Below, one piece after another: positions 12,461-56,525 of a stretch of 64,000 nt of DNA. The position numbers were made by a program, and so were the translations under genes. How positions within the stretch are numbered: the stretch's first letter is position 1; each line of letters starts with the position of its first letter. A model generated the notes under the pieces. That model made no database searches. It saw only the letters and a list, made by a program, of their open reading frames with translations, and was not told the origin of the DNA. Origin of the DNA: Callorhinchus milii (lineage: Eukaryota); contig NW_024704742.1 of assembly GCF_018977255.1 (NCBI RefSeq), positions 137,702,001 to 137,766,000 of the forward strand, in the 5' to 3' direction.

Positions 12461-13203
12461 ATGGAAGAAGCAAACAAAATTGGGGGAGGGATCAGAAGGA
12501 AATGACCCAAGCTGGACCGAAGTCACAAATAAGGAGAATATAAGTGGTCAGGGACCTAATACAATTATAGAACAGAAGGGTGAAAAGACTTTCAAAAATA
12601 AAATGAGAGGAGCAACGAATAATAATGAATGAAACTGTCTGTACAGCAATGTTCACAGCATCCGAAATAAAACAGGAGGACTGAGGCAGTAATTCGTAGT
12701 GAGGAAACAGATATATTTGGGATTACTGAAACGTGGCTACAGAAAGACCAGGACTGGCAATTAAACATTGCAGGTGTAACATATTTAGATAGGATAGAGA
12801 TGGGGTAAAAGGGCCATGGAGTAGCTGAACATGTTAGGGATAACATCATGGCAGTAGAAAAAAGGAAATCGGGAGATCAAAACCAGGGGCCATCAATATA
12901 AAATTGTCACAAGTGGATTAAATAGGGAAGTTAGACGTTTGCAGAAATGTCTTCACACACAGAGTAGTGAGAATGTGGAACATCTGCCACAAGGAGTTGT
13001 TGAGGCTAATAGCATCGATGTATTTAAGAGGAAGCTGGAGAGGTACTTGAGGGAGAAAGGAATAGAAGGTGATGCTTGATGGCTTAGTTGAGGAAGAGCA
13101 GGAGGAGGCTCATGTGGAGCTAAACACCGGCATAGACCAGTTGGGCTGAATGGCCGGTTTCTGTGCAATATATTCTAATGTTTTCTAATGTATTCTAACA
13201 CAA
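12461..13203 (+). mobile_element. CR1-clade LINE fragment (endonuclease N-terminus plus 3' tail) upstream of the gene A leader
   Basis: Reads as ...NVHSIRNK...GITETWLQK.... The empty site is seen at about 32850. An inverted copy lies at about 55840-56525. Confidence 0.7.
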
Positions 13204-28200: not shown

Positions 28201-31200
28201 CCTTCACAACCCTGACCCTGTGCCCTCCTGACGTACCTGAGAGCAATGACGTATTTCTTATCAAATCCGTGAAGAAAATCAGTCAGTTCTACACTGTCTG
28301 CTGTTGGGAAGCTAAATATCGCCTTCTAATAGTATGCGGTGTCTGGGATGGTAACCAGTCTGTCTTGTTCTGACACCGATGGACCTGGTCGTGTGTTTAA
28401 GTTTTGCTTTACTCGGAGGGTAATCAGGGATTGGAACAGGTGGCCAGGAAGGGTGGCTGAGGCCAGGACACTGGGACTCATTTAAAAAGCAGTTGATACT
28501 GTGATTGGGGGGGGGGGGGTGGTGTTCTGTAAGGATAAGACCAGATGGACCTTCTTCATTCAGACCAATCCTGGATCTTGTGAAAAACACATTATTTATC
28601 GTTGGGAAGCTTCCCGCTGCTTGTCCAGCGAGGATCACCCTGGGCTTTAGCTTGTAGGGTTAACAGGAGACAAGTGGGAAGAAACCCTGTCCCCAGTAAC
28701 AAACTAAAGTCTCCTCCTTTTGATACCATGTTTCTTGTGCTAATTAACACATGAGGAACAGGGTAAGGAATGAGACACCTCGTCTGTAACATTGCGTCAC
28801 TGATGACCTGTTCATTCACCCCTTTCCGTGTCCCACAGAGACAAGAGATCTCTTACCAACAACCTGCAGCCGTGACATGTCCTGTGTCACCTGGTCCTGA
28901 TGGGATCCTTCCATTATAAACATGACGTGTACGTGACAGAAATACCGGCCGGTGTCGTTTAACTCCAGGCCCCTGATCTTCAGGGAAGCGTCTCCATCTC
29001 CCACATTCCTGACCAGCTTGTAGCGATTTCCTTCATTCACTGTCTCTGACTCCCCGGAGTTGGTGCGGGCGGTGAGGCCAAGAGTGTAATTAAACACCAG
29101 CTGCCCATGTGGCCTCCCTCTCCTCCAAAGCACTGTGACTGTGGCACGATTCTGGTATGTGTTGGGGATGGTGAAGGAGCAGGGCAGTGTGGCATCACCT
29201 CCCTTGGTACCAGTCACTGACCGGAGCTTCTCTTCATGACCTGAGACAGGAACAGGATTGGAATAGTGCAGAGCAGTCAGTGTGACAGAGTACATGTTAC
29301 ACACTGTGAAATCCTGGATATGTTACCTGCTCTTCATGGCACCATCTCCCTCAGGCCTGTGCTCCTCACTCACCCTCTATGAGCCTATGGGCAGCACAAG
29401 GTCTCACACACAAAACCTGGGATTTTTTTAGGTCCAATAAAATAATTACTGGCAAGTGTAGTGACTGTTTTGCAGCGAATTTACTCAGATGATGGACCCC
29501 CCAATGGTCATGAAGACTCCAGGATTCTACCCTGCACCCTGAAAGTTTATGAAAAGCCAATTCAGATTGAGGATTGTTGGTGAAGACCGAAGGAGAAAAC
29601 CCCTCCTCATGTGTTGGGGCAGCCGATTGCCTGATACATACAGAAATATGTCACCATTGTAAAGAGTATCTAAACCAGAGAGTGAGTACTACATATATAT
29701 CCACTCTGAGTATCTAATTCAGAGAGTATTATGCACATGTTGGCAAGTGCAAGGCTTGGGGACACCAGAGTATGTGTTTGGGGCAATTTGGAATTCAACC
29801 AACGAAAACAGCATAATATTAATAATAATAATAAGAATTATTATTGATACAGCGCTTTTCATGTCTTTAGATGTCTCTGTTCCCTGTGATGGACGGTGTG
29901 TAGCAGAATATGCTGTAAAGTGAATTGACTGTATATTTGTGGGTGAAATGCAGCAGCCAAGTGCGCACAGCAGTGTCCCACAAACAGTCGTGGATTGATA
30001 ATGACCAATTTCTTTTTCTCTTGAGGCATTATTATCAGGTGTGTGGCGTCAGGAAACTTGCCCAAGGTTTGACACTGCTGGGAATCGAACTCAGGCCTTC
30101 TCGCTTGTGAGGCGAGTGCTCTAACCACTACACTACAGGACTCCACAGCACAGTTGGCCAGTGACGGCACTGTGTGGCAAGCTTCCTGCTGCTTGTGTAG
30201 ATCTGTGGTGTTATTGAGCTGAGTGGGAATGGTCGCGCCCAGTGACTGGTCTGCCAATGAGGCTGATGCCAAATCAGCAGTGCCCTGGAGTACTGCGACC
30301 GCCTGGCTCAGGAACCAGACTAGAGACCCCCACAGAGGGTTGACTCCTGCCCGACGTCCTGTGGCCTGGTATGTCACTGTGGAGCCAGTCCCTGCTTTAC
30401 ACCGGCTTTTTTGTGGTGGGAGAACCTTACAGGGCAGTTTGTGACCTGCCAGCCACCTTGATGTTCTCGAGATCCATTGCCAGGTCCCAGGCTTACTGAT
30501 CACCAGCTGCTGAATCCAGGTCCTCATGTGAGGGGCCTCGGCAAATAGACAACCCCACAGTGAGGCCGCCTCAGCCACCAGGTGCTCAGTGACAGGTCAG
30601 TGTACAGCACAGCCCTCCCTTCCTGCAGCCGCTCACTCACTGTCACCTGTCAGCTCCCTGCTACACACCGTCCATCACAGGGAACACTGGCTCTCTATTG
30701 CCCGTCCTGGGACGGGACACTTCCCACTGACTCCGGCCCCAGTGAGGAACGTCACGTCTCATTCCCACTTCCCATCGTTCCTCACCTGTAACAATCAGAC
30801 GTGCTCCGGGGTCAGTTTCAAACTTTCCGTCCCCACCCTGGAGCTCCACACGACAGGACCACAGCTTATTATTGTCCTCTCCCCTCAGTTGGTTTATCTT
30901 TATTGTAGCGTCGTTTCTCCTCGGGTTCCCAATCACTCGATATCGCTCTCCCTCGTTTACATCAATGACATTTTGATACTTTCCCTGTGAATCCGGCCTA
31001 TAATTTGTATATTTAATATACACAGGACCAGTCCTTCCTGCCTTCCACATGATGGTGATGTTCCCTGTGTATCTGGGGTGAGGGGGAGTGAACTTGCAGT
31101 ACACAGTGACCGGTGACCCTAACCTGCCGGTCACTGTATCGGGGGTCTCCATCGTCCAGCCATTCCTACTGAGCCCTGTGAGGACACACATGGTGTAATG

Positions 31201-32453
31201 TGAACCAGAACACAACATAAAAGCAAACAGGTAACACTGAGCTTGTACAAGAGCTTGGTTAGGTCACAGCGGGGAGTAATGTGGATAGTATTGGGATCCC
31301 CACTGTAAGAAGGATAAAAAAGTGATGGAAAAGTTGCAGCTTAGATTCACTGCGATGTCCCCAGGGTTTAGCGGTTTAAGTTTGTAAAGGAGATTTGAAA
31401 GGTTGGGGCTTTTTTAGCAAACTGAGAAGGTTAGGGGTGACCTGATAGCGGTCGCTAAACCTCAAAGAGTCACAAAAGATTTTCCTCTCATCAGCCAGTC
31501 AGTCACAAGAGGAATAAATCTAAAACAATCACAAAAAATTAACTAAGAGAGGGTTAGAAACCTTCACTTTACACAGAGAGGATGGGATTGTGGAATCCTC
31601 TGCCACAGACGGAGTTGAGGCAAAGTCCGTCAATAATAATAATGAGTCTTGCAGTTCATACAGGTTTGATCACATCTTCGAGATGTCTCAAAGTGCATCA
31701 TAGAATACACTGTAAAGTGAATTGACAGTATATATTGTGGGCGAAACGCAGCAGCCAATTGCGCAGCTGTGTCTCACCAACAGTCGTGGATTGAACAACA
31801 TATTTATAATTTTTTTTGAAGGAATTATTCCCCACGAAAATGTGAACCACCAATCAACTAACAACCAGGTTCCTACTTACTGCTAAGTAAACAGAAGCGT
31901 GTGGTGAGAGGAAAATTGCCCAACTTATGCTAATTGAACCCAAGTCTCTTGCCTGCGAGGCGAGTGCTCTAACCACTGAGCTACAGGAATCCACAGTCAA
32001 GTCAATAAAAGGGAATTGATGTTCGAAGAGGAGGAAATTAAATGGTGTTGGGGGGAGGGAGAGTGAGCGAGACACAGGGTGGGACTCAGCGTCATGTGAA
32101 CAAAATAAAACTTGTCAAAATGGAATGAACGGGCGGAGGGGCTGTTTTCATGCTATAAAAATACCATCATACCTTTCATGTCGGGAGGACATCAAGAGAG
32201 GGGTGAGGGGAAGGGACTGTGGGATGGAGTTCCAAAGGGTGAGGCAAACACTTACACTGTGGGGCTCAGTGAGTAACACAGTTCTGTTCAGTTTAGAGAC
32301 GGGAATCTTATTTGCAGGAGATATCACATGACTGTAATTATTGCAGTAAAAGGTAAAGCAGTAATTAAAGCCAGTCAGGTTTCTGATTGGAAAGTACGTA
32401 CGGGAGGCAGAGGCTGACAGGACCAGGGTACAGAGCACAGCTCCCAGCATCAT
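16154..32453 (-). CDS. SIGLEC15-like: Gene B: Siglec-15-like inhibitory-type receptor (leader-V1-V2-C2/neutral TM-multi-ITIM tail), about 506 aa
   Basis: Exons 32453-32402, 31175-30786, 29240-28857, 25946-25587, 24299-24263, 21951-21899, 21304-21245, 20224-20165, 18756-18721, 16873-16838 and 16206-16154 total 1521 nt in one frame with AG/GT boundaries. Motifs are VIYSVF, VIYSVV and VIYAVV. Which tail exons are actually used is inferred. Confidence 0.8.
16838..16873 (-). CDS. Gene B 36-nt cytoplasmic mini-exon ([12 protein letters not shown]), copy 2
   Basis: TACTAAT branch-like motif, TCTCTCTCTCCTTCCCAAG acceptor and GTGAGT donor; phase 1-1. Confidence 0.65.
18721..18756 (-). CDS. Gene B 36-nt cytoplasmic mini-exon ([12 protein letters not shown]), copy 1
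   Basis: Same splice signals as 16838-16873; part of a 1883-bp tandem duplication. Confidence 0.65.
20165..20224 (-). CDS. Gene B 60-nt ITIM mini-exon ([20 protein letters not shown])
   Basis: TCTCTGACAG acceptor and GTAAGA donor; phase 1-1; canonical VIYSVV. Confidence 0.75.
21245..21304 (-). CDS. Gene B 60-nt ITIM-like mini-exon ([20 protein letters not shown])
   Basis: Paralog of 20165-20224, 1080 bp away; GTAATT donor; the Y+3 residue is Phe. Confidence 0.65.
21718..21770 (-). CDS. Candidate cytoplasmic exon [18 protein letters not shown] (phase 1 to 0)
   Basis: CACACACAG acceptor and perfect GTAAGT donor. It is frame-compatible on entry, but it has no unambiguous phase-0 partner exon. 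Confidence 0.45.
21899..21951 (-). CDS. Gene B cytoplasmic exon 2 ([18 protein letters not shown])
   Basis: TTTTCTCTTTTTTTCAG acceptor and GTAACT donor. It is phase 2 to 1, which restores the frame after the 37-nt exon. Confidence 0.72.
23040..23650 (-). mobile_element. L2 fragment
   Basis: [10 protein letters not shown] and RIDFKIL motifs in ORF 23060-23953. Confidence 0.75.
23710..23880. repeat. (TG)n-rich microsatellite
   Basis: Seen directly. Similar tracts occur at about 2240-2500, 36460-36720 and 59380-59470. Confidence 0.85.
24263..24299 (-). CDS. Gene B cytoplasmic exon 1 ([12 protein letters not shown])
   Basis: CTTTCTTTGGTCTCTTTAG acceptor and GTGAGA donor; 37 nt, phase 1 to 2. 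Confidence 0.7.
24482..24856. repeat. 72-bp minisatellite (about 5 copies) in the TM-cyt1 intron
   Basis: 24-aa periodicity in ORF 24259-25035; about 4 copies at about 60080-60380. Confidence 0.92.
25587..25946 (-). CDS. Gene B C2-set plus uncharged TM exon
   Basis: The C2 part is nearly identical to gene A. The TM is [20 protein letters not shown] followed by RVKR; GTAGGT donor; 360 nt. Confidence 0.88.
26150..27980 (+). mobile_element. Degenerate L2 (RT half)
   Basis: QSGF..HSMETAL and YVDD motifs with frameshifts; duplicated at about 61700-63490. Confidence 0.85.
28857..29240 (-). CDS. Gene B V2 exon
   Basis: 384 nt with the same splice sites as gene A V2; [18 protein letters not shown]. 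Confidence 0.9.
30786..31175 (-). CDS. Gene B V1 exon (retains F-strand Arg, WSCRVE)
   Basis: 390 nt; CGT codon at 30850-30852. Confidence 0.9.
32402..32453 (-). CDS. Gene B proximal leader exon
   Basis: [17 protein letters not shown] plus GTACGT donor. Confidence 0.82.
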
Positions 32454-33559
32454 CGTCCCTCACTCAGGACACACTCCTTCCCCGCGCACGTCTGCCTCGC
32501 ACTGGCACAGCTGGTCACCCTTCTCTTTCCTTCCTCCTCTCGTTCTGTGGTCAACACCAGAGCTCCAACCCCCACATCCGCTTTGTTCTGATGCTCCGTC
32601 ATGTTTCTCCCCAACACTAACCCGCCCTCACCCCCTGTCACAGTAACTGGGTGACTTTTAATGCTCTATTACATTTCACACCCTTTTTATATTCGCAGCG
32701 TTTACATGGGAACACAAGAATTTGCTGATGAAGACAAAGGTCCATCTTGTTTGCCTTCCACCATCCTGGCAGTCGCTTGACGTGTCATGTCCCAGTGTAT
32801 CCCAAGATATTATTTTTCTAGCAGAACTCTAATTTGTTCTTGAAACAGACAACTCTCTTTGCTTCCACCATCTTCCTCAGGAACCTTCCATAAGTTTCCT
32901 ACTCTCTCACTGAAATACCGATCAAATGTTTTAATAACCTTTCCATTTCTGTATTTGATGCAGAATTTGTAATGTTAGAAAGTCTTGAAGGTTTTCAACA
33001 GATCGTGACTGTGTTCATGGACAAACACAGCAGCGAGTTTGCAAACAGCGATATCACAAAAACAGCCAGAAGGTAAATGAACCATTAATCTGGTTGATTG
33101 TCGCGCAGGAAGCCGGGAGGAACTCGCTTCTCTTTTCCATCAGTGTCGATGGATCTTTAATGTCAGGCAAACAGGTCCTTGGTTTAACGTCTCATCTGAA
33201 GGACGGCAACTCTGACGATGTACAGCTCCCCCTGTGCTGGAGCATCAGCCTGGACTCTGAGCACAATCCCGACATGGGCACGAACCCAGGCTTTAGACCC
33301 AGAGGCGAGAGTGTGACTGACTGAGCCAAACTGACTTCCTGCGTTATGTTAAGGTCAGAGAAGTGGAGCTGCTGTCCATGTGATTTGTTGGTTTACAGCA
33401 CAGAAGCCTTCCCCCCCTCTGCTGTCTGTGCTGGTGATCGCTCTTTACTGGGGCTCTAGCTTCTCTTTTCCATTAATGTTGAGGGATCTTTAATGTCAGG
33501 CAATTGGGTCCTTAATTAGGGACGGCGTTGTTGGTACTTAGAAAATCGTAACATGATTA

Positions 33560-39958: not shown

Positions 39959-42900
39959 CTATACAGAGCTCCTTCTTTTCTTGGCCTCAGGATGGAGACG
40001 CCTTGAATCTATGAGTGAAGAAAAAGAATGAGATCATGTTTCAGCCAAACAAACACTGTTATTGGGAGTCACGGGTTCCCATGTTCTCAAAGGCTCAACA
40101 GAATCGCAAAATTCCACCTCATCTCAGCCCTTGAGATGTTTTGCCCTCAAATATCGGATGGTCCAGACTAGGGGTAAATCCAACAACAACTTGTATTCAC
40201 ACAGGACACAGGACAGCGTCTCAGAGCTCTTTATCGTGGCAAGGTTGGATGCCAAGCAAAAGGGGCAGCCAGAGGAGTGGGCTATGAGGAGACGAGACCT
40301 TCCCCATATTTATGTAGGTCTCAAGGTGGGATTTCTCCGAGGGTCCTGGCCAGCAATCCTCCAGATGAATTGGTCGCCCACATCACTGCTGGGTGTGGGG
40401 GACTTTGCTGCGCACTGACTGGCTGCAGCGTTTGCTGACAGAAACACAGTCACTACATCTGACAAAGCACATTAGTTATAATAATACTTCCATTGGATGC
40501 AGCGCATCATCACATGGTTAAACATCTGAATACTCTTCACAGGATGTTTGTTACTGTGAAGTGTAGTGACTGTGCTTGTTTTGGAATAATAATAATTCTT
40601 GCATTTGATACAACGCCTTATCATGATTTCAAGATATCTCAAAGTGTTTCAGGAGATTTTACTGTAAAATAGTGACTGTGTATTGTGTTGTGTTATGTAT
40701 TATAACCACTGGAGTGGTGTTCAGTGGTTTTGTATTTAAGATACAAACAGCAAAGGATTGACAAACCTTGTGTTTTACAGAGGAGAACGATCCCGATCAC
40801 CAACAGAAAGAGACATTTAGCTGCTGGCATCAGCCACAGCATCACAGTGATGAAGCTGCCATCACTCTGTGGTCCAGGTGCGAGGATGTCTCGGGCGTCT
40901 CTGCCCTGTGTGTTCTCAGCTACACAGCGGTAAGTTCCCCTCAGCCTCGGGCCCCGGATCTCCCCCACGGTTAGATGCTTGTCCGGTACATGTGTGACTG
41001 GCGTGTGGTTGGTGTTAATGGGCAGCGTGTTATGCTCGGGGTCGATCCATGTGATGTTGGCCGGTGGTTCCCCCTCAGCCGAGCACACAATGTCACCTCC
41101 GGCCACGAGGGACAGACTCAGGATGACGGCCGGAGCTTCAGGTATAAAGAAACACAGAGATATTCAAACCAAACAACTGTCCCCATCGTGTCTGTGCTGG
41201 TGCTCACTCCCCCATTGGAGCTCTCTACTCTAACCCCATTCACTGCTCTCTCCCCATCGTGTCTGTGCTGGTGCTCACTCCCCACTGGAGCTCTCTACTC
41301 TAACCACATTCCCTGCTCTCTCCCCATCGTGTCTGTGCTGGTGCTCACTCCCCCACTGGAGCTCTCTACTCTAACCCCATTACCTGCTCTCTCCTCATCT
41401 TGTCTGTGCTGGTGCTCACTCCCCCACTGGAGCTCTCTACTCTAATCCCTTCTCTTTTCTTGTACATGTTGTTCATAGTGTTCCGCTACAACCACTTTAC
41501 AAAATATTTTTTTAATATTCGAGTCTATTCGAGTCTCAGGGCCTCAGGACGTCTTTTTGTTGGGAAAGACGCGATGCAAATGTATTTTGTATCAATTGTA
41601 TCAATGTAATTGATAAAATCTCAAGAGAGTTTTGTGTGAAGAAAATGCTTCAGCCCATTTGACCTCAAAGTTCCCAATTCCCCCCCAACCCCACTGTCGA
41701 TGTTACAGCATCGACCTCTTTCTGTAATAAGCCCCAGTGTCCGGCCTCAACCACCCTTCCTGGTAACTTCCTGTCATTAATTACCTTCTGGACAAAGAAA
41801 TACTTCCGGGTATCTGTTCTTATTTTGCCCATCACAACCCTGACCCTGTGCCCTCGTTACGTATCTGAGAGCAATGACGTATTTCTTATCAAATCCGTGA
41901 AGAAAATCAGTAACTTCTACACCGTGTGCTGTTGGGAAACTAAATATTGCTGTTCTGATGGCAGTGCAGTGTCTGGGATGGTAACCAGTCTGTCTTGTTC
42001 CGACACTGATGGACCTGGTCATGTGTTTAAGATTTGCTTTACTCGGAGGGTAATCAGGGATTGGAACAGGTGGCCAGGAAGGGTGGCTGAGGCCAGGACA
42101 CTGGGACTCATTTAAAAAGCAGTTGATACTGTGATTGGGGGAGGGGGGGGTGGTGTTCTGTAAGGATAAGACCAGATGGACCTTCTTCATTCAGACCAAT
42201 CCTGGACTTATGAAAAACACATTATTTATCGTTGGGAAGCTTCCCGCTGCTTGTCCAGCGAGGATCACCCTGGGCTTTAGCTTGTAGGGTTAACAGGAGA
42301 CAGGTGGGAAGAAACCCTGTCCCCAGTAACAAACTAAAGTCTCCTCCTTTTGAAACCATGTTCCTTGTGCTAATTAACACATGAGGAACAGGGTAAGGAA
42401 TGAGACAAACCTCGTCTGTAACATTGCGTCACTGATGACCTGTTCATTCACCCCTTTCCATGTCCCACAGAGACAAGAGATCTCTTACCAACAACCTGCA
42501 GCCGTGACATGTTCTGTGTCACCTGGTCCTGTTGGTACGTTTCCTTTATAAACATGACGTGTACGTGACAGAAATACCGTCCGGTGTCGTTTAACTCCAG
42601 GCCCCTGATCTTCAGGGAAGCGTCTCCATCTCCCACATTCCTGACCAGCTTGTAGCGATTTCCTTCATTCACTGTCTCTGACTCCCTGGAGTTGGTGTGG
42701 GCGGTGAGGCCAAGAGTGTAATTAAACACCAGCTGCCCATGTGGCCTCCCTCTCCTCCAAAGCACTGTGGCTGTGGCACGAATCTGGTATGTGTTGGGGA
42801 TGGTGAAGGAGCAGGGCAGTGTGGCATCACCTCCCTTGGTACCAGTCACTGACCGGAGCTTCTCTTCATGACCTGAGACAGGAACAGGATTGGAATAGTG

Positions 42901-45900
42901 CAGAGCAGTCAGTGTGACAGAGTACATGTTACACACTGTGAAATCCTGGATATGTTACCTGGTCTTCATGGCACCATCTCCCTCAGGCCTGTGCTCCTCA
43001 CTCACCCTCTATGAGCCTGTGGGCAGCACAAGGTCTCACACACAAAACCTGGGATTTTTTTAGGTCCAATAAAATAATTACTGGCAAGTGTAGTGACTGT
43101 TTTGCAGCGAATTTACTCAGATGAGGACCCCCAATGGTATGAAGCTCCAGGATTCTGCCCTGCATGAGGAGTGCTGTATAAATGCACGTTATTGTTGTTG
43201 TTGAACAACCTAATTCAGATGGAGGTTTGGTGGTGTAAAGAAAATCCCTCCTCATGTTTTGGGGCAGTCGGTTTCCTGATACATACAGATATCTGTCACC
43301 ATTGTTAAGAGTATCTAAACCAGAGAGAGACTTCCACATATATATCCACTCTGAGTATGTAATTCAGAGAGTATTATGTTTGGGGCAATTTGGAGTTCAA
43401 CCAGCAAAAGCAGCATAATAATAATCATAATAATACCTGGATTTGATATCTCGCTATTGAGACATCTCAAAGCGCTTCACCAAATATACTGTCCAGTGAA
43501 TTGACTGTATAACTTGTGGGAGAAATACACCAGTCAATTGTGCCAGCAGCGATCCAACAACCGTCATGGATTGAGAGAGCAAATTTTTAAAAAATTATTT
43601 TTGGAGAGATTTTGCCCCCAGAGGTGATCCACCAATCGACTAAACTACCGGCTTCCTACTTACTGCGAGGTAAACAGAGGCGTATATAGCAAGGAAACTT
43701 GCTCAAGGTTTCTTCCTGCCCAGGAATCAAACCCAAGTCCTCTCGCTTGTGAGGCGAGTGCTCTAACCACTACACTACAGGACTCCACAGCACAGTTGGC
43801 CAGTGACGGCACTGTGTGGCAAGCTTCCTGCTGCTTGTGTAGATCTGTGGTGTTATTGAGCTGAGTGGGAATGGTCGCGCCCAGTGACTGGTCTGCCAAT
43901 GAGGCTGATGCCAAATCAGCAGTGCCCTGGAGTACTGCGACCGCCTGGCTCAGGAACCAGACTAGAGACCCCCACAGAGGGTTGACTCCTGCCCGACGTC
44001 CTGTGGCCTGGTATGTCACTGTGGAGCCAGTCCCTGCTTTACACCGGCTTTTTTGTGGTGGGAGAATCTTACAGGGCAGTTTCTGACCTGCCAGCCACCT
44101 TGATGTTCTCGAGATCCATTGCCACGTCCCAGGCTTACTGATCACCAGCTGCTGGTCCTCATGTGAGGGGCCTCGGCAAATAGACAACCCCACAGTGAGG
44201 CCGCCTCAGCCTCCAGGTGCTCAGGGGACTTCCCATCGTTCCTCACCTGTAACAATCAGACGTGTTCTGGGCCCAGTTTCAAACTTTCCGTCCTCACCCT
44301 GGAGCTCCACACAACAGGACAACAGCTTATTATTGTCCTCTCTCCTCAGTTGGTTTATCTCTATTGTGGCGTCGTTCCTTCTCGGGTTCCCAATCACTCG
44401 ATATCGCTCTCCCTCGTTTACATCAATAACATTTTGATACTTTCCCTGTGAATCCGGCCCATAATTTGTATAATTAAAATGCGCAGGACCAGTCCAGTCT
44501 CCCTTCCACATGATGGTGATGTTCCCTGTGTATCTGGGGTGAGGGGGAGTGAACTTGCAGTACACGGTGACCGGTGACCCTAACCTGCCGGTCACTGTAT
44601 CGGGGGTCTCCATCGTCCAGCCATTCTCACTGAGCCCTGTGAGGACACACATGGTGTAATGTGAACCAGAACACAACATAAAAGCAAACAGGTAACACTG
44701 AGCTTGTACAAGAGCTTGGTTAGGTCACAGCGGGGAGTAATGTGGATAGTATTGGGATCCCCACTGTAAGAAGGATATAAAAGTGATGGAAAAGTTGCAG
44801 CTTAGATTCACTGCGATGTCGGGGAGCGGCAGCAGGACAGCGCGGGGAGGAGCCTGGGCCTACTGACCCAGGTACTTAAACTCGACGCCGGAGCGAGTGC
44901 AGCCAGTCGGGGAGCGGCAGCAGGACAGCGCGGGGAGGAGCCTGGGCCTACTGACCCAGGTACTTAAACTCGACGCCGGAGCGAGTGCAGCCAGTCGGGG
45001 AGCGGCAGCAGGACAGCGCGGGGAGGAGCCTGGGCCTACTGACCCAGGTACTTAAACTCGACGCCGGAGCGAGTGCAGCCAGTCGGGGAGCGGCAGCAGG
45101 ACAGCGCGGGGAGGAGCCTGGGCCTACTGACCCAGGTACTTAAACTCGACGCCGGAGCGAGTGCAGCCAGTCGGGGAGCGGCAGCAGGACAGCGCGGGGA
45201 GGAGCCTGGGCCTACTGACCCAGGTACTTAAACTCGACGCCGGAGCGAGTGCAGCCAGTCGGGGAGCGGCAGCAGGACAGCGCGGGGAGGAGCCTGGGCC
45301 TACTGACCCAGGTACTTAAACTCGACGCCGGAGCGAGTGCAGCCAGTCGGGGAGCGGCAGCAGGACAGCGCGGGGAGGAGCCTGGGCCTACTGACCCAGG
45401 TACTTAAACTCGACGCCGGAGCGAGTGCAGCCAGTCGGGGAGCGGCAGCAGGACAGCGCGGGGAGGAGCCTGGGCCTACTGACCCAGGTACTTAAACTCG
45501 ACGCCGGAGCGAGTGCAGCCAGTCGGGGAGCGGCAGCAGGACAGCGCGGGGAGGAGCCTGGGCCTACTGACCCAGGTACTTAAACTCGACGCCGGAGCGA
45601 GTGCAGCCAGTCGGGGAGCGGCAGCAGGACAGCGCGGGGAGGAGCCTGGGCCTACTGACCCAGGTACTTAAACTCGACGCCGGAGCGAGTGCAGCCAGTC
45701 GGGGAGCGGCAGCAGGACAGCGCGGGGAGGAGCCTGGGCCTACTGACCCAGGTACTTAAACTCGACGCCGGAGCGAGTGCAGCCAGTCGGGGAGCGGCAG
45801 CAGGACAGCGCGGGGAGGAGCCTGGGCCTACTGACCCAGGTACTTAAACTCGACGCCGGAGCGAGTGCAGCCAGTCGGGGAGCGGCAGCAGGACAGCGCG

Positions 45901-46133
45901 GGGAGGAGCCTGGGCCTACTGACCCAGGTACTTAAACTCGACGCCGGAGCGAGTGCAGCCAGTCGGGGAGCGGCAGCAGGACAGCGCGGGGAGGAGCCTG
46001 GGCCTACTGACCCAGGTACTTAAACTCGACGCCGGAGCGAGTGCAGCTAGGCAGTGGAGGGAGGTGTGGGGGCGGAGCGGGGGAACTGCGACGTCATAGA
46101 TTAGTTTTCAGGTGAGTGCGCGCGCACAAAAAA

Positions 46134-46172
<39 letters not shown>

Positions 46173-49100
46173 CGCCCCCCCCCCCCCCCCCCCACTATGG
46201 TCCTGTTGGGTTCGATGCCCCAATCTGCGGGATAATGCCATCCACCTGACCGCTCGCTCCCGGTCCCCGCGTGCGCACTATGGCTGCCGCTTTGACCCGA
46301 GCCCCCTCACCCCCTCCCTCCCGCCCCCCTCCTCTCTCCCCCCAAACCCTCCCCCCTCTCCATCTCTCCCGCTCTCTCCTCCTCTCTCTCCGTCCCTCTC
46401 GTCTTCTATCCCCACTTGACCCTCCCACAACCTCCCTCTGTTCCAGTCTGGGAATCCTCCGCCGGGCTCACCGCGGCACTCGGCGTTGGCTGTCCAGCAG
46501 CAGCCACACCGACTGCCCCATTCCCCACCACTCTCGCCAGCCACCCCGGACACAGACCCGGGGAGTCAACCTCTCCTCCCTCATCCCCATTCCCCCCACC
46601 CCTGCCTCACAACCTGGACCCCCTCCCCTCCCACACACCCTTCTGTCAACCGCTCCCTCCACATCGGACTGCAAAATGTCCGCTCCCTCTGCAACAAGGC
46701 CCTGGTCATCAACGATCTCATCCTTGATGAGAACGTTGATATCATGGCCTTGACAGAAACGTGGCTCACCCCAGGCGACACCTTCCCCCTCACGGAGGCC
46801 ACGCCACCCGGCTACACCTCCCACCACATCCCCCGCCCCAACCGCCGTGGCGGTGGTGTTGCCCTTATCTCAAGGACACCACTTGCCCTATCCCCCTACT
46901 CCTCTGGCTCTTTCCCCTCCTTCGAGCACCTCACCCTCTCCCACCCCTCATTCCTCTCCCTTAAAATCCTCCTCCTCTACCGGCCCCCTAAAACCTCTCC
47001 CACCTTCATCTCTGACATTTCAACACTCCTCACATCTCTTTGCCTCTCCTCTGATCGCCTCATCATCCTGGGCGACTTTAACCTACACTTCACCCCCTCC
47101 TGCTCCATCTCCACAGACTTCTCTTCCCTGCTCTCCTCACTCAACCTTTCCCTACACATAAACTCCCCCACTCACAGTCACGGCCACCCACTCGATTTGG
47201 TGATCACCCGGGGCCTCAGTGTCTCGGATGTCACTATTACCGACAAGGCCATCTCCGACCACTACTTCATCTCCTTCACCACCTCCACCCCCCTCCCCAC
47301 CTCCACCAGACCCACCACCATCTTCTACCGCCCTTGGAAGAAGTTACCCCCACAATCCCTAACCGATGCCTTGGAGTCCTCTGAACTCCTCTCCCTCTGG
47401 CCTTCAACCCTCACCGACCCCTCTTCTCCTCTCTCCCTCCTCCACAATATCCTCTCCTCCACACTCGATACTCTTGCCCCCATCACTTCCCGCACTGTCT
47501 CCTACTCCCGCTCCTCCCCCTGGTACACCACCCACCTCCGCTCACTGAAATGCCAGGTGCGGGCTGCTGAGCGCACCTTTGTCAAATCCGGCTTAACGGT
47601 CCACCGACAAATCTGGCTGGACCTCCTCAAAATTTACCGCTCCACTCTAGCCTCGGCCAAGTCGTCCTTCTACTCCAGGATAATCCTGGAGGCGAAGAAC
47701 AACCCCAGGCTACTGTTTTCCACCACATCCCGACTCCTCCGTCCCCCCCGCCACCCCGCGCAGGTCATCTCCTCCAACCTTCACTGCGAGGAGATGCTGG
47801 ATTTCCTTGAATCCAAGATCAAGGGAATCCGCTCCGCGGTCACTTCCCCTCCAACTTCCACCCACCCCTTCCCTCCCACACTCCGACTCCTACCCATCCT
47901 CCCCTACACACCTTCGTACCCGTTTCCCCACCCTCTGTCACTGAACTCATCCTATCCCTAAAACCAACCACCTGCTCCCTTGACCCCATCCCCACTCCAC
48001 TCCTTATCTCCCAGCTCCATTTTCTTGCCCCACACATCACTGACATCATAAACCTGTCCCTCTCCTCTGGCTCTGTCCCCATTCCATTAAAAACTGCCAT
48101 CATCACGCCCACCCTGAAAAAACCCTCCCTTGATGCGTCGCAGCTATCAAGCTACCGGCCCATCTCCAACCTCCCCTTTCTCTCCAAGGTCTTGGAAAGA
48201 GTTGTCGCCTCCCAACTGCGCTCTTTCCTCTCCACCCATTCTCTTTTTGAACCCCTTCAGTCAGGTTTCCGTGCTGCTCATAGCACAGAAACTGCCCTGG
48301 TCAAGGTCACCAATGATATCCTGACCATCTGTGACCAGGGCTCCCTCTGTCTCCTCGTCCTCCTCGACCTATCGGCAGCATTCGATACGGTCGACCACGC
48401 TATCCTACTCCACCGCTTGTCCTCCCACCTCAACCTTCAAGGCACTGTCCTTGAATGGTTTAGCTCTTACCTTTCCCACCGTCTTCACTTCGTCTCAACG
48501 AATGGCTTCTCCTCCACCCCCCGTACTGTCTCATGTGGTGTCCCTCAGGGCTCTGTCCTCGGTCCCCTCCTCTTCACCCTCTATATGCTCCCCCTCGGTG
48601 ACATCATCCGCAAACATGGGGTTAACTTCCACATGTATGCGGATGACACCCAACTCTACCTTTCCTCCTCTACTCTCAACTCCACGACCACCGATGTCCT
48701 GACAGCCTGCCTGTCCGACATCGAGTCCTGGACGAGAGACAACTTTCTTCAGCTCAACGTGCGAAAAACCGAGGCCCTCCTGATTGGCTCACGTCAGCGC
48801 CTCCGCACCTCAGGCGCTGACACCATCAGCATCCAAGGCTGCACTCTCCACCTCTCAAAGCCAGTCAGGAACCTCGGCGTTTTGTTCGACCCTGAGCTGT
48901 CCTTTCTCCCTCACATCCGCACCACAACTGGCACCGCCTTCCATCACCTCCGGAATATCGCCAGATTACGGCACTACCTCACCCCTCACGCTGCTGAAAC
49001 CCTGGTTCACGCCTTTGTCACCTCAAGGCTGGACTATGGGAACTCTCTCCTCGCCGGCCTTCCCGCCACCTCCCTCCACAAGCTGCAGGTCATTCAGAAC

Positions 49101-52100
49101 TCTGCAGCTCGTGTACTGTCCCGCACCAGGCTTCGGGACCACATCACTCCCACCCTCGCTCGCCTCCACTGGCTCCCCATCCCCCAGAGGATTGATTTCA
49201 AGATCCTCATCCTCACCTACAAGGCCATTCACGGCCTTGCTCCCTCCTACCTCTCCAACCTACTATCCCCCTACCTACCTGCCCGTACCCTCCGTTCCTC
49301 TGGCTCCGGTCTGCTCCACGTCCCCCGCCCCAACCGCCCTACTATCGGTGGTCGGGCCTTCAGCCTCTCAGCCCCGAGGCTCTGGAACTCCATCCCCCAG
49401 TGCCTTCGCCTTGCTTCCTCCCTTTCCTCCTTCAAGGCCGGTCTCAAAACCTTTCTCTTTGACCGTGCCTTCAGCTCCCCTCTCGACTCTCTTCCTCCTC
49501 CTCGCTCCCTCCCTTCCCTCCCCTCACCCTGACCATTTCCCCCTCCTCTCTCCCTCCCTTCCCTCCCCTCACCCTGACCATTTCCCCCCTGCTCGGGTCA
49601 TGACCCAACTGTGCAGCGCCTTGGGACGTCCTCCTGACGTGAAAGGCGCTCTATAAATGGAATCTTGTTGTTGTTGTTGTTGTTGATGTCCCCAGGGTTT
49701 AGCGGTTTAAGTTTGTAAAGGAGATTTGAAAGGTTGGGGCTTTTTTAGCAAGCTGAGAAGGTTAGGGGTGACCTGATAGCGGTCGCTAAACCTCAAAGAG
49801 TCACAAAAGATTTTCCTCTCATCAGCCAGTCAGTCACAAGAGGAATAAATGTAAAACCATCACAAAAAATTAACTAACAACAACAACAACAAGATTCCAT
49901 TTATAAAGCGCCTTTCACGTCAGGAGGACGTCCCAAGGTGCTGCACAGTTGGGTCATGACCCGAGCAGGGGGGAAATGGTCAGGGTGAGGGGAGGGAAGG
50001 GAGGGAGCAAGGAGGGGGGAAATGGTCAGGGTGAGGGGAGGGAAAGGAGGGAGCAAGGAGGGGGAAATGGTCAGGGTGAGGGGAGGGAAGGGAGGGAGCG
50101 AGGAGGGGGAAGAGAGTCGAGAGGGGAGCTGAATGCACGGTCAAAGAGAAAGGTTTTGAGACCGGCCTTGAAGGAGGAGAGGGAGGAAGCGGCGAAGGCA
50201 CTGGGGGATGGAGTTCCAGAGCCTGGGGGCTGAGAGGCTGAAGGCCCGACCACCGATGGTAGGGCGGTTGGGGCGGGGGACGTGGAGCAGACCAGAGCCA
50301 GAGGAACGGAGGGTACGGGCAGGTAGGTAGGGGGATAGTAGGTTGGAGAGGTAGGAGGGAGCAAGGCCGTGAATGGCCTTGTAGGTGAGGATGAGGATCT
50401 TGAAATCAATCCTCTGGGGGATGGGGAGCCAGTGGAGGCGAGCGAGGGTGGGAGTGATGTGGTCGCGGTGTCTGGTGCGGGACAGTACACGAGCTGCAGA
50501 GTTCTGAATGACCTGCAGTGTGGAGGGAGGTGGCGGGAAGGCCGACGAGGAGAGAGTTCCCGTAGTCCAGCCTTGAGGTGACAAAGGCGTGAACTAGGGT
50601 TTCAGCCGCGTGAGGGGTGAGGTAGTGCCGTAGTCTGGCGATGTTCCGGAGGTGATGGAAGGCGGTGCCAGTTGTGGTGCGGATGTGAGGGAGAAAGGAC
50701 AGCTCAGGGTCGAACAAAACGCCGAGGTTCCTGATGGCTTTGAGAGGTGGAGAGTGCAGCCTTGGATGCTGATGGTGTCAGCGCCTGAGGTGCGGAGGCG
50801 CTGACGTGAGCCAATCAGGAGGGCCTCGGTTTTTCGCACGTTGAGCTGAAGAAAGTTGTCTCTCGTCCAGGACTCGATGTCGGACAGGCAGCTGTCAGGA
50901 CATCGGTGGTCGTGGAGTTGAGAGTAGAGGAGGAAAGGTAGAGTTGGGTGTCATCCGCATACATGTGGAAGTTAACTCCATGTCTGCGGATGATGTCACC
51001 ACAGGGGGAGCATATAGAGTGTGAAGAGGAGGCGACCGAGGACAGAGCCCTGAGGGACACCACATGAGACAGTGCGGGGGGTGGAGGAGAAGCCATTCGT
51101 CGAGACAAAGTGAAGACGGTGAGAAAGGTACGACCTAAACCATTCAAGGACAGTGCCTTGAAGTTTGAGGTGGGAGGACAAGCGGTGGAGTAGGATAGCG
51201 TGGTCGACCGTATCGAATGCTGCCGATAGGTCGAGGAGGACGAGGAGACAGAGGGAGCCCTGGTCACAGATGGTCAGGATATCATTGGTGACCTTGACCA
51301 GGGCAGTTTCTGTGCTATGGGCAGCACGGAAACCTGACTGAAGGGGTTCGAAAAGAGAATGGGTGGAAAGGAAAGAGCGCAGTTGGGAGGCGACAACTCT
51401 TTCCAAGACCTTGGAGAGAAAGGGGAGGTTGGAGATGGGCCGGTAGCTTGATAGCTGCGACGCATCAAGGGAGGGTTTTTTCAGGGTGGGCGTGATGGTG
51501 GCAGTTTTTAATGGAATGGGGACAGAGCCAGAGGAGAGGGACAGGTTTATGATGTCAGTGATATGTGGGGCAAGAAAGTGGAGCTGGGAGATAAGGAGTG
51601 GAGTGGGGATGGGGTCAAGGGAGCAGGTGGTTGGTTTTAGGGATAGGATGAGTTCAGTGACAGAGGGTGGGGAAACGGGTACGAAGGTGTGTAGGGGAGG
51701 ATGGGTAGGAGTCGGAGTGTGGGAGGGAAGGGGTGGGTGGTGGGTGGAAGTTGGAGGGGAAGTGACCGCGGAGCGGATTCCCTTGATCTTGGATTCAAGG
51801 AAATCCAGCATCTCCTCGCAGTGAAGGTTGGAGGAGATGACCTGCGCGGCGTGGCGGGGGGGACGGAGGAGTCGGGTTGTGGTGGAAAACAGTAGCCTGG
51901 GGTTGTTCTTCGCCTCCAGGATTATCCTGGAGTAGAAGGACGACTTGGCCGAGGCTAGAGTGGAGCGGTAAATTTTGAGGAGGTCCAGCCAGATTTGTCG
52001 GTGGACCGTTAGGCCAGATTTGACACAGGTGCGTTCAACGGCCCGCACCTGACTTTTCAGTGAGCGGAGGTGGGTGGTGTACCAGGGGGAGGAGCGGGAG

Positions 52101-53857
52101 TAGGAGACAGTGCGGGAAGTGATGGGGGCAAGAGTATCGAGTGTGGAGGAGAGGGTATTGTGGAGGAGGGAGAGAGGAGAAGAGGGGTCGGTGAGGGTTG
52201 AAGGCCAGAGGGAGAGGAGTTCAGAGGACTCCAAGGCATCGGTTAGGGATTGTGGGGGTAATTTCTTCCAAGGGCGGTAGAAGATGGTGGTGGGTCTGGT
52301 GGAGGTGGGGAGGGGGGTGGAGGTGGTGAAGGAGATGAAGTAGTGGTCAGAGATGGCCTTGTCGGTAATAGTGACATCCGAGACACTGAGGCCCCGGGTG
52401 ATCACCAAATCGAGTGGGTGGCCGTGACTGTGAGTGGGGGAGTTTATGTGTAAGGAGAGGTTGAGTGAGGAGAGCAGGGAAGAGAAGTCTGTGGAGATGG
52501 AGCAGGAGGGTGTGAAGTGTAGGTTAAAGTCGCCCAGGATGATGAGGCGATCGGAGGGGTGGGAGAGGGTGAAGTGCTCAAAGGAGGGGAAAGAGCCAGT
52601 GGAGTAGGGGGATAGGGCAAGTGGTGTCCTTGAGATAAGGGCAACACCACCGCCACGGTTAGAGAGGGTTAGAAACCTTCACTTTACACAGAGAGGATGG
52701 GATTATGGAATCCTCTGCCACAGACGGAGTTGAGGCAAAGTCCGTCAATAATAATAATGAGTCTTGCATTTCATATAGGGTTTGATCACATCTTTGAGAT
52801 GTCTCAAAGTGCATCATAGAATACACTGTAAAGTGAATTGACAGTATATTTTGTGGGCGAAACGCAGCAGCCAATTGCGCAGCTGTGTCTCACAAACAGT
52901 CGTGGATTGAACGACATATTTATAATTTTTTTTGAAGGAATTATTCCCCACGAAAATGTGAACCGCCATTCAACTAACAACCAGGTTCCTACTTACTGCT
53001 AAGTAAACAGAAGCGTGTGGTGAGAGGAAAATTGCCCAACTTATGCTAATCGAACCCAAGTCTCTTGCCTGCGAGGCGAGTGCTCTGACCACTGAGCTAC
53101 AGGAATCCACAGTCAAGTCCATAAAAGGGAATTGTTGTTCGAAGTGTATTAAATTAAATGGTGTTGGGGGGAGGGAGAGTGAGCGAGACACAGGGTGGGA
53201 CTGAGCATCATGTGAACAAAATAAAACTTGTCAAAATGGAATGAACGGGCGGAGCGGCTGTTTTCATGCTATAAAAATAGCATCATTTTAACAGTCAGAA
53301 ACGGGAGTAGAATACAGAGCTGCAGTGAGAACTAGCGCCAGCACAGACACTTTGTTTGCGATCAGCCGGGTGTCTGATAACAGAGGAAACTCATCACTGC
53401 GCTGAAGAGTCTTCAAACCAAACTACTCAGAATTCCACCTATATCTGGAAATGTCTGTGTGTCTGGAATGAGATGTGCACTTTGTCCCCAGAGGGACGTA
53501 TCCTGCTCACCTCATCACAGACAGTATTCTGCGCAGGATGGGAAGATCACCGATTCAACAACAAATTATATAGCACCTTTCATGTCGGGAGGACATCAAG
53601 AGAGGGGTGAGGGGAAGGGACTGTGGGATGGAGTTCCAAAAGGTGAGGCAAACACTTACACTGTGGGGCTCAGTGAGTAACACAGTTCTGTTCAGTTTAG
53701 AGACGGGAATCTTATTTGCAGGAGATATCACATGACTGTAATTATTCCAGTAAAAGGTAAAGCAGTAATTAAAGCCAGTCAGGTTTCTGATTGGAAAGTA
53801 CGTACGGAAGGCCGAGGCTGACAGGACCAGGGTACAGAGCACAGCTCCCAGCATCAT
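39959..53857 (-). CDS. SIGLEC15-like: Gene C: Siglec-15-like activating-type receptor, 414 aa, intron 1 expanded by two L2 insertions
   Basis: Exons 53857-53806, 44636-44247, 42872-42489, 41135-40767 and 40008-39959 total 1245 nt in frame. TM Lys at 40816-40818; V1 reads LSCCVE. Confidence 0.82.
44821..46047 (+). repeat. Perfect 88-bp tandem monomer array (13 full copies plus 83 bp), GC/CpG-rich
   Basis: The unit GGGGAGCGGC...GGTACTTAAACTCGACGCCGGAGCGAGTGCAGCCAGTC recurs at 44821, 44909 ... 45965. Confidence 0.97.
46280..49532 (+). pseudogene. L2 ORF2 (endonuclease/reverse transcriptase), frameshifted
   Basis: ORF track pieces 46271-46753, 46486-47961 and 48192-49532 overlap in different frames and together form one APE-RT polyprotein. 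Confidence 0.85.
49877..52660 (-). mobile_element. 5'-truncated second copy of the same L2, inverted, tail-to-tail with the first
   Basis: (CAA)n tail at about 49877. ORFs 50996-52408 and 50141-50584 are almost identical to copy 1. There is an internal deletion of about 100 bp near 52560. The flanks rejoin the sequence seen at about 10845-10850; no clear TSD. Confidence 0.93.
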
Positions 53858-54306
53858 CGTCCCTCACTCAGGACACACTCCTTCCCCGCGCACGTCTGCC
53901 TCGCACTGGCACAGCTGGTCACCCTTCTCTTTCCTTCCTCCTCTCGTTCTGTGGTCACCACCAGAGCTCCACCCCACACATCCGCTTTGTTCTGATGCTC
54001 TGTAATGTTTCTCCCCAACACTAACCCGCCCTCACCCCCTGTCACAGTAACTGGGTGACTTTTAATCCTCTATTACATTTCACACCCTTGTTATATTGGC
54101 CACGTTTACATGGGAACATACAAATTTGTTGGCGAAGGAACGCAAAGGTCCATCTCGTTCGCCTTCCACCATCCTGGCAGTCGCTTGACATGTCATTTCC
54201 CAAACCATACAGTGTATCCTGAGATATTATTTTTCTTGCAGAAATCTATCTAATTTGTTCTTGAAACAAACAACTATGGAAGAAGCAAACAAAATTGGGG
54301 GAGGGA

Positions 54307-54331
54307 NNNNNNNNNNNNNNNNNNNNNNNNN
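54307..54331. other. Assembly gap (25 N)
   Basis: Run of N. Confidence 1.
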
Positions 54332-56525
54332 CCCCTCACTGCCCCCCTCACCCCCACTATCCCTCTGCCCCCTACCGACCCCTCAATCCCCCTCGTGGCC
54401 CCCACACTGCCCCCCTCACAAATCTTCCCCCCTCACACACTCTCCCCCAAACCCACTGCATCGTTGATTCCAAGGCATTGAATTCAGATTGTCTTATTCA
54501 CTATTTTTCCTACTGAACCTGATCTCCACAGTAAATATTCTGTTCTGAAATTACTGAATAAAATGCTTGTGAACGTATGGCTCGGTGGTGTATGTTAATG
54601 TGGCCGCAGTCAGGCGAACCTGTGAGACAGTAATGGAGTATTGTAGTTCAGTGGTGACAGCACTCGTCGCAAGCAACAGTTCCCGGGTTCGATTCCGGGC
54701 CGACCCAAACGGTAGTCAAGTTTCCTTACTCCACCGCCGGTGTTTACACAGCAGTAACAAGGAACCCGGTTGTTAGTCGATTGGTGCATCGCTTTTTCTG
54801 GGGTAACAATCCCTTCAAAATATTTCTCTTTTTTCATTTGGTCACTCAATCCACGACTGTTTGTGGGACACTGATGTGCGCAATTATCTGCCGCGTTTCA
54901 CCCACAAAAATATATTATAATAATCTGTCATATCTCTCCTCGTCTTCTCCCACAGCTGCCTCTGTGCACCCATTACTCATCAGGTGTCAGTCTGGTGAGT
55001 CAGTAGCACTCTCGCCTGTGGGTCAGCGGGTTGTGGTGTTCACCATCCAGGTGCCGTCCTTCAGATGAGACGTTAAACCAAGGACCTGTTTGCCTGACAT
55101 TAAAGATCCCTCGACACTGATGGAAAAGAGAAGCGAGTTCCTCCCGGCTTCCTGCGCGACAATCAACCAGATGAATTGTAGACTAATTGTCTTCTAGGAA
55201 TGCCTACCTTGAAGAAGTTCTGCTCTTCACTTCACCGTGACTTTCTTTCTTCCCTTTTACCCTGCTCACCTTCTTAGCTATCTGTTTCCCTTCTTGTGTT
55301 TGATGATGTTTTCATTAAAACCTGTTTTCACAGCCACATCTCTTTCCTCAGTAACTGTCTTAAACTGCAACTAATTCCATATGGATTCCCTCTGAAATTC
55401 CACCCTTCCTGCTTTTAATCCACCCACAATCATCAAAATTCAGCGCTCTTCTGATCACTGTTCTTGCCGACTCATGATATCTACTGTCTCCAGCGTGTGC
55501 CGACACGTGCAAACTCTCAACCTTTCCCTTCAGCAGCTCCGACACACTTTATCTCAGAACTGCCCTGAACCTCATCTCTGTTTTGTCCTTCACCTTATTC
55601 AGCGCTTTAACAAAAAACTCTTTTTATTTCTTTCAGATGATATGGCTGTGTGCAAAGTGGTTGCTGTGTTTGTCCACGAACACAGTCAGTACCTGTTGAA
55701 GACCTTTGAAACTTTCTAACATTACAGATTCTGCATCAAATACAGAAATGTAACGCTTATTCAAACATTTGTTCACTACTTCAGTGAGAGAGTAGTAACT
55801 TATGGAGGGTTCCCTTTGGAGACGGTGGAAGCAAATTGTGTTAGAATACATTAGAATATATTGCACAGAAACCGGCCATTCAGCCCAACTGGGCTTTAGC
55901 TCCACATGAGCCTCCTCCTGCTCTTCCTCAACTAAGCCATCAAGCATCACCTTCTATTCCTTTCTCCCTCAAGTACCTCTCCAGCTTCCTCTTAAATACA
56001 TCTATGCTATCAGCCTCAACAACTCCTTGTGGCAGATGTTCCACATTCTCACTACTCTGTGTGAAGACATTTATTCTTCAAACGTCTAACTTCCCTATTT
56101 AATCCACTTGTGACAATTTTATATTGATGGCCCCTGGTTTTGATCTCCAGATTTCCTTTTTTCTACTGCCATGATGTTATCCTAACATGTCAGCTACTCC
56201 ATGCCCTTTTATCCCATCTCTATCCTATCTAAATATGTTACACCTGCAATGTTTAATTGCCAGTCCTGGTCTTTCTGTAGCCACGTTTCAGTAATCCCAA
56301 ATATATCTGTTTCCTCACTACGAATTACTGCCTCAGTCCTCCTGTTTTATTTCGGATGCTGTGAACATTGCTGTACAGACAGTTTCATTCATTATTATTC
56401 GTTGCTCCTCTCATTTTATTTTTGAAAGTCTTTTCACCCTTCTGTTCTATAATTGTATTAGGTCCCTGACCACTTATATTCTCCTTATTTGTGACTTCGG
56501 TCCAGCTTGGGTCATTTCCTTCTGA
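54332..56525 (-). repeat. Inverted copy of about 12492-14620
   Basis: ORFs 54585-56425 mirror ORFs 12592-14426 on the opposite strand. Confidence 0.92.

Follow-up and report, generated by a model that had tools for sequence, protein, structure and literature searches.

A perfect tandem array of 88-bp promoter-like monomers at the 5′ end of a CR1/L2-group LINE in Callorhinchus milii

Clades of long interspersed nuclear elements (LINEs) solve the retention of a promoter despite 5′ truncation in different ways, and tandem monomers are a well-studied solution only in rodent L1. The jockey, Doc, and I factor elements of Drosophila use internal promoters of the initiator type, consisting of an initiator (Inr) and a downstream promoter element (DPE), and Pr77 of the trypanosomatids is a 77-nt promoter. 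The monomers of mouse L1Md elements carry the transcription start sites (TSSs) and show common truncation sites, and 99% of the monomeric promoters have 10 units or fewer (PMC6454616). Tandem duplications at the 5′ end are also found in several mammalian L1s (PMC5381506), and some elements of the CR1 group that lack open reading frame 1 (ORF1) have one to five repeating subunits of 100–500 bp close to their 5′ untranslated region (UTR) (PMC13343379, Fig. 4 legend). Here we describe a LINE with a tandem-monomer head, a kind already known, in a 64,000-nucleotide stretch of the Callorhinchus milii genome (assembly GCF_018977255.1, contig NW_024704742.1, positions 137,702,001 to 137,766,000 of the forward strand). 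This whole stretch is referred to as the window, and its first letter is position 1. The element belongs to the CR1/L2 group of LINEs, lacks ORF1, ends in a microsatellite tail, and encodes an APE endonuclease and a reverse transcriptase (RT); an array of 88-bp units with promoter-like motifs stands at its 5′ end.

The likeness to mouse and rat L1 (A, Tf, and Gf monomers) lies in head-to-tail, CpG-rich monomers at the extreme 5′ end, inside the target-site duplication (TSD) and followed by a non-monomeric tether. The 5′-most unit is incomplete in both, and the logic would be the same, any unit being able to initiate and truncated progeny keeping a promoter, an activity that is predicted for the element described here. 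The two differ in clade: ORF1 and a poly(A) tail are found in L1, and the chimaera element belongs to the ORF1-less CR1/L2 group and ends in a (TTG)n tail. Its unit measures 88 bp, compared to approximately 200 bp in mouse L1 and approximately 650 bp in rat L1; its layout is TATA-like plus Inr, in contrast to the starts centered on YY1 and AP-1 in L1; and its 14 perfect units lie beyond the range of 99% of the mouse promoters. Promoter activity and TSSs are proven for mouse L1, whereas here they are predicted from the sequence. With jockey, Doc, the I factor, and Pr77, the element would share a short 5′ core promoter that is transcribed into the RNA, which solves the inheritance of the promoter; those promoters, however, are single-copy and act downstream, while here TATA-like boxes lie upstream and in tandem. 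The elements with 5′ subunits mentioned above resemble it in belonging to the CR1/L2/Rex1 group, in lacking ORF1, and in having species-specific subunits near the 5′ UTR, but the arrays differ (1–5 subunits of 100–500 bp versus 14 units of 88 bp), and that survey analyzes neither promoter motifs nor TSSs nor TSDs and names neither the species nor the family of the arrays (PMC13343379). The first-pass annotation of this DNA knew of no such head in L2 elements. In that general form the claim was too broad, as 5′ subunits had been noted for the ORF1-less CR1 group (PMC13343379); what this locus adds is a longer array of shorter units, the TATA-like/Inr geometry, and a clean proof of co-insertion.

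The left flank of the element (44228–44820) has two paralogs in the window (10070–10662 and 30767–31359), which are 95.3–95.6% identical to it overall and 98.2–98.6% identical over their final 220 bp. Each paralog ends in an empty site with a single ATGTC (10658–10662 and 31355–31359), where the sequence runs uninterrupted (...GCGATGTCCCCAGGG... / ...CACTGCGATGTCCCCAGGGTTTAGCGG...) and corresponds to the left flank joined directly to position 49686 and onward. The inserted segment spans 44821–49685 (4865 bp) and is bounded by a 5-bp TSD, ATGTC (Table 1). Because the two empty paralogous sites carry one ATGTC, the array and the LINE body arrived in one event, and the array belongs to the inserted DNA; it is neither an adjoining satellite nor host sequence.

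Tandem Repeats Finder (TRF) reported a single array at this place, with an 88-bp period, 14.0 copies, 100% matches, and a score of 2460. A direct check counted 0 mismatches to perfect 88-bp periodicity across 1230 bp (13.98 units), and the periodicity ends at both array borders with no extension on either side. The array resembles a CpG island: its GC content is 68% and its observed/expected CpG ratio is 0.80 over 1.23 kb, compared to a ratio of 0.66 in the element body and 0.38–0.43 in the flanks. Units were numbered from the first G of GGGGAG, at 44821 (position 1). The last unit departs from the monomer after ...GTGCAGC, where it reads TAGGCAG and onward, without the Inr-like motif. The predicted RNA structure of the monomers is ordinary (z = +1.06). 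A 23-mer of the monomer had no match in metagenome and genome contig collections, which appear to contain no C. milii contigs. A known RNA or tRNA as the source of the array, the tether, or the C-rich leader behind it was ruled out, with both Rfam and ARAGORN negative.

A TATA-like TACTTAAA occupies unit positions 53–60 and is present in 14 of the 14 units, and CCAGTC occupies positions 83–88, with GCCAGTCG in 13 of the 14; the predicted +1 of unit 1 is A44905 (A85 of the unit). The circular monomer was scanned for an exact Inr (BBCABW or YYANWYY) accompanied by a TATAWAWR 8-mer with at most 2 mismatches that starts 28–34 nt upstream. The scan returned a single combination, in which TACTTAAA precedes the A of GCCAGT by 32 nt, and none on the minus strand. 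TACTTAAA is the only 8-mer of the monomer within 2 mismatches of TATAWAWR, and its Inr partner is one of only two exact Inr matches. An equal geometry arose in 0.54% of 5000 dinucleotide-preserving shuffles and in 1.4% of mononucleotide shuffles; it exceeds chance, with the caveats of a post hoc test and a weak TATA match. The first-pass annotation had listed approximately 14 identical monomers inside the TSD, the unit positions of both motifs, a predicted +1 lying 32 nt past the start of the TATA-like box, and a last monomer without the Inr. All of these are confirmed by the unit count, the ATGTC on both sides, the two empty sites, and the motif positions (GCCAGTCG 13 times, TACTTAAA 14 times). 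Its statement that CCAGTC fits the Inr consensus holds for BBCABW, which CCAGTCG matches exactly, and not in full for the older YYANWYY, to which there is one mismatch.

We propose that the monomers serve as a heritable promoter, that is, a monomeric head of the mouse L1 type, and we put the probability of this at about one half. In its favor count the exact periodicity of the array, its arrival in one event with the APE and RT body, the rarity of the TATA-like/Inr geometry in shuffles, the CpG-island character, a 5′ end 1–4 nt downstream of the predicted +1, the youth of the family, and the precedents in mouse L1, in other mammalian L1s, and in the ORF1-less CR1 group. We infer promoter activity, the TSS, the presence of the head in other family members, and the mode of unit gain from sequence features. 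The proposal is that a young, 4.87-kb, ORF1-less LINE of the CR1/L2 group inserted whole and antisense into an intron of a V-set immunoglobulin (Ig) receptor gene paralog, with a bipartite head of approximately 14 CpG-rich 88-bp monomers followed by the non-monomeric tether. Each monomer would be a small RNA polymerase II core promoter, made up of an AT-rich TATA-like box, an Inr 32 nt downstream of it, and flanking G-rich GC/GA boxes. Initiation would be possible in any unit, each transcript would retain the units downstream, and 5′-eroded progeny would keep promoter competence. Such an arrangement would provide redundancy against 5′ loss and not regeneration, since a start at the Inr drops the first 84 nt of its unit and the array therefore shrinks by at least one unit per cycle. 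The promoter had been called self-regenerating, which does not follow unless a separate process re-expands the array. Lost units would have to be replaced by a separate duplication, through unequal exchange, replication slippage, or RT template jumping, and the perfect identity of the units would be the trace of that process; monomer gain is unexplained in mouse L1 as well (PMC6454616). In a full-length LINE, a tandem array placed precisely at the 5′ terminus is presumably far more often the 5′ UTR of the family than a transduced flank. If the proposal is true, the monomeric head of this L2-type chimaera element would be a convergent solution across deeply separated LINE clades, written in a different core-promoter grammar, TATA-like plus Inr and not YY1. 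The body has decayed and the 14-unit array is flawless in a single dated insertion for which empty paralogous sites give the reference, a contrast that also offers a handle on monomer gain.

Several observations weigh against a heritable promoter. The 5′ end of the element is ambiguous between 44818 and 44821, as GTC (44818–44820) is common to the target and the monomer, and the first base of the element is G86 or else G1 of the unit that follows, 1–4 nt downstream of the predicted +1 (+2 to +5). It had been placed exactly at the predicted start, which is not the case; it lies within the GTC microhomology. The 5′ end falls on a 3-nt microhomology with the target, and GTC occurs once per monomer. 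Microhomology joining of cDNA to the target is the usual route to 5′-truncated LINE copies, and we estimate that truncation of this type within a longer array fits the 5′ end at least as well as a TSS does. Because the microhomology gives the same phase, the 5′ end is no independent evidence of a TSS, and it is the only 5′ end at hand for phase clustering. As for the motifs, TACTTAAA is a weak TATA box with 2 mismatches to TATAWAWR, and neither a DPE at +28 to +32 nor a YY1 site was seen on hand inspection of the unit. BLAST and nhmmer at sensitive settings found no further match to the monomer, the tether, or the leader anywhere in the window. Of 55 L2/CR1-like loci from metagenomes that extend 400 bp or more upstream of the APE match, 0 showed an adjacent array, although short-read contigs tend to break there, and a 5′ array was seen in 0 of 2 L2-like relatives from teleosts; this is weak evidence and says only that 5′ arrays are not a general feature. 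Finally, the ORF of this copy (copy 1) is broken while its array is flawless.

Other points on the same side speak for a one-off 5′ capture, by which the array and the tether would be foreign, derived from a transcribed minisatellite or from a CpG-island promoter together with its first exon and splice donor, and would have been taken up once by this L2 copy. The routes would be read-through from upstream of the source element (5′ transduction) or an RT template switch onto an A-rich RNA; LINE–RNA chimeras have reportedly been found for L1 in one study. The A43/C23 tract behind the tether would be the junction, and the family's own 5′ end would lie near 46171–46194. A switch from G-rich to C-rich sequence occurs exactly at this tract and resembles a recombination junction (G and C contents of 40% and 28% in the array, 46% and 16% in the tether, 16% and 50% in the leader, and 15% and 43% in the body). 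A long pure A run separates the two parts, with a perfect CAG/GTGAGT splice donor 11 nt before it, and neither the tether nor the leader is similar to the monomer. There is also no second array-bearing copy in the window and no array in the relatives, and replacement of the 5′ UTR is documented for L1 (PMC5381506). A piece of non-LINE sequence 5′ of a LINE within one TSD, with an A-rich tract and a compositional break, is what the locus shares with L1-type 5′ transductions and chimeric retrocopies, but in this case a perfect tandem array of promoter-like units makes up the 5′ part, and the literature consulted documents no such event for L2. The tract at the composition flip has no poly(A) signal within 68 nt upstream of the A run, which makes an mRNA tail unlikely, and the Rfam and tRNA scans identified no donor RNA. 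Moreover, 5′ transductions and chimeras are rare, and it would be improbable for the captured piece to be a perfect array that starts at the very end of the insertion. A start at the C tract would leave a 5′ UTR of just 86–109 nt or so before the ATG at 46280. We regard capture as unlikely; if the captured array is a promoter and heritable, capture would merge with the heritable-promoter reading as the birth of a new 5′ UTR, and as a one-off event it would give a snapshot of a LINE acquiring one. Twin-priming inversion, with the G-rich array as inverted C-rich L2 sequence, was ruled out by the lack of similarity on either strand.

The array could also be a genuine minisatellite in the 5′ UTR of the family that is transcriptionally inert or tolerated, with the promoter in the tether or the leader and the geometry coincidental. 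The weak TATA-like box, an Inr match that is partial under the older consensus, and the post hoc search for promoter motifs suit this explanation, as do the canonical GC box and the near cyclic AMP-response element (CRE) in the tether and the tendency of the family to form minisatellites, seen in an internal 45-bp tail repeat of variable copy number. We nevertheless consider it quite unlikely. The geometry is found in merely 0.5–1.4% of shuffles, the array is CpG-rich, as in known LINE promoters, and a promoter downstream could not reproduce the array in progeny, so that its place inside the TSD calls for initiation in the array or upstream of it.

Comparably doubtful is that the number and identity of the units are secondary, the RNA having carried one or a few units that were multiplied later by slippage or unequal exchange in situ, or by an artifact of assembly or polishing. 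The absence of any difference over 1230 bp of CpG-rich DNA would be accounted for in this way, and long pure homopolymers adjoin the array. The body of copy 1, by comparison, has a 7-nt frameshifting deletion and a second frame break, and in a three-way comparison with copy 2 (described below) and P0029 it shows 2 private amino-acid changes in 385 aligned columns. Had the changes in the body followed the insertion, the 1.23-kb CpG-rich array should have gathered several substitutions too, and it shows none. The body defects may, however, predate the insertion, with a defective source RNA mobilized in trans, and the array begins exactly at the 5′ end of the insertion, which is unexpected for a later duplication of an internal segment. 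A flawless array on a damaged copy may thus mean that the defects came before a mobilization in trans, that the array was homogenized or expanded later, or that assembly or polishing made the units identical. A variant of the heritable-promoter reading, in which an L2 lineage independently evolved monomers with TATA and Inr that are re-amplified during reverse transcription and the promoter is truly self-renewing, the RT at the RNA 5′ end (a unit boundary) jumping back to an internal unit boundary by way of those few bases that here pair with the target and so adding perfect units, would explain 14 flawless units on a copy with a damaged body, and it strikes us as very improbable.

Table 1. 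Features of the monomer-headed LINE (copy 1) and of the neighboring copy of its family, in window coordinates.
Feature	Position	Strand	Details
Left TSD ATGTC	44816–44820	.	Last 3 nt (GTC) also close a monomer
88-bp monomer array	44818–46047	+	13.98 perfect units, G-rich and CpG-rich (TRF, direct check)
TATA-like TACTTAAA, unit 1	44873–44880	+	Every 88 bp, 14 times; final one 46017–46024
Inr-like GCCAGTCG, unit 1	44902–44909	+	Every 88 bp, 13 times; final one 45958–45965; none in last unit
Non-monomeric G-rich tether	46048–46127	+	80 bp
GC box GGGGCGGAGC in tether	46069–46078	+	
CRE-like GACGTCA in tether	46090–46096	+	
Splice-donor consensus CAG/GTGAGT in tether	46109–46117	+	Perfect 5′ splice-site match
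Homopolymer tract	46128–46193	+	A6CA36 (46128–46170), then C3GC19 (46171–46193)
C-rich leader and Pro/Ser-rich N-terminal region	46194–46674	+	Includes ATG at 46280
APE endonuclease domain (Exo_endo_phos)	46675–47262	+	Pfam E 1.3e-15, residues 64–259; ORF piece 46486–47961
7-nt deletion site	47862–47870 (near 47868)	+	One CCACCCA of a short direct repeat lost; frameshift
RT (RVT_1) and C-terminal domain, ORF piece	48192–49532	+	Pfam E 1.6e-30; frame open from approximately 47862
45-bp tandem repeat	49492–49588	+	2.2 units across stop codon and start of 3′ UTR; 3.1 units in copy 2
3′ hairpin	49610–49655	+	8-bp stem; AGCGCCTT (49615–49622) pairs with AAGGCGCT (49643–49650)
(TTG)7 microsatellite tail	49665–49685	+	No poly(A) tail; same tail in copy 2
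Right TSD ATGTC	49686–49690	.	Matches left TSD and empty sites
Copy 2 of the family, 5′-truncated	49878–52660	-	No array

The body of the element has a single APE+RT ORF that is colinear with full-length teleost proteins and is interrupted here by the 7-nt deletion, which was defined relative to copy 2 and to the UniRef proteins of C. milii. Between the array and the APE domain, the ORF list and Pfam gave no second ORF with a domain, and hence no ORF1. The ATG at 46280 is out of frame with the APE domain. In the APE frame itself, no ATG follows the upstream stop; the reading frame 46280–46753 has no Pfam match and overlaps the APE ORF in another frame. The closest proteins are UniRef entries of C. 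milii (95–99% identity; the RT is 99% identical to a C. milii UniRef RT), followed by RTs of teleost LINEs (55–60%) that are labeled only "jockey-like". The protein of another genomic copy is 98.7% identical over 391 aa, and because of this and of the second insertion 193 bp away, we consider the family young. The first-pass annotation had called the element an L2 LINE. The APE and RT domains, the hairpin, and (TTG)7 establish a LINE of the CR1/L2 group, and the L2 label itself is plausible, as it fits the architecture and the tail; chondrichthyan L2s without ORF1 are described (PMC13343379). Four proteins from Vibrio and E. coli assemblies (P0166, P0169, P0170, and P0181, on contigs of approximately 2 kb) appear among the teleost LINE matches with 57–58% identity to this RT. 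They are annotated as "reverse transcriptase family protein" or hypothetical protein and look like fish DNA contaminating bacterial assemblies.

The segment between the array and the coding region holds several smaller features. The tether is not a degenerate monomer, as its alignment score equals the shuffle mean. No acceptor is obvious downstream of its splice-donor consensus, which could bind U1 close to where the transcript starts or be what is left of a captured first exon. The A/C tract is bracketed by GCGCAC (46122–46127) and ACTATGG (46194–46200), and GCGCACTATGG stands uninterrupted 80 nt downstream (46273–46283); one copy of a short duplicated motif may have received the tract by insertion, or the tract may have expanded inside it. 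At 46209–46219, GGTTCGATGCC is an exact match to the Pol III B-box/tRNA T-arm consensus GGTTCGANNCC, with a possible T stem (4 of 5 bp) around it. ARAGORN and Rfam call no tRNA there, and the motif, at the beginning of the C-rich part, may be left over from a tRNA-related sequence.

Copy 2 lies tail-to-tail with copy 1 at a distance of 193 bp and is 95.8% identical to it overall (BLAST), with 2.0% substitutions in the RT region. Its 5′ truncation falls at approximately 46838 in copy 1 coordinates; 98 bp are deleted internally, and the TSD does not exceed 1 bp. Both copies are missing from two other paralogous units and are independent insertions.

The window contains a tandem segmental duplication of a minus-strand cluster of V-set Ig receptor genes (exons, for example, at 44221–44679 and 42448–42936), and it is because of this tandem duplication that empty sites are available. 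Duplicated units lie at 8000–12500, 28700–32900, and 42300–54300, and also at 24200–28100 and 59800–63600, and the paralogous units are 92–98.5% identical. Copy 1 is antisense to a V-set gene, approximately 140–180 bp upstream of a V-set exon with respect to the gene, and the insertion site is probably intronic. The window contains one run of 25 Ns, at 54307–54331.

A C/T-rich 71/72-bp minisatellite recurs at 6604–7123, 24484–24856 (5.2 units, 100% identity), 41180–41449, 60083–60381, and 61221–61558. At two of these places it lies upstream of older L2 fragments (61221–61558 before 61664, and 24484–24856), and it was considered as a second LINE head. This was ruled out because the same repeat and its flanks occur without L2 in the paralogous host segments 6283–7227 and 40859–41553. 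On the minus strand, 53038–53106 has a weak tRNA-like match (Rfam RF00005, 23.8 bits versus a gathering score of 29) and is probably the head of a tRNA-derived short interspersed nuclear element (SINE); a second B-box match is located at 54686–54696.

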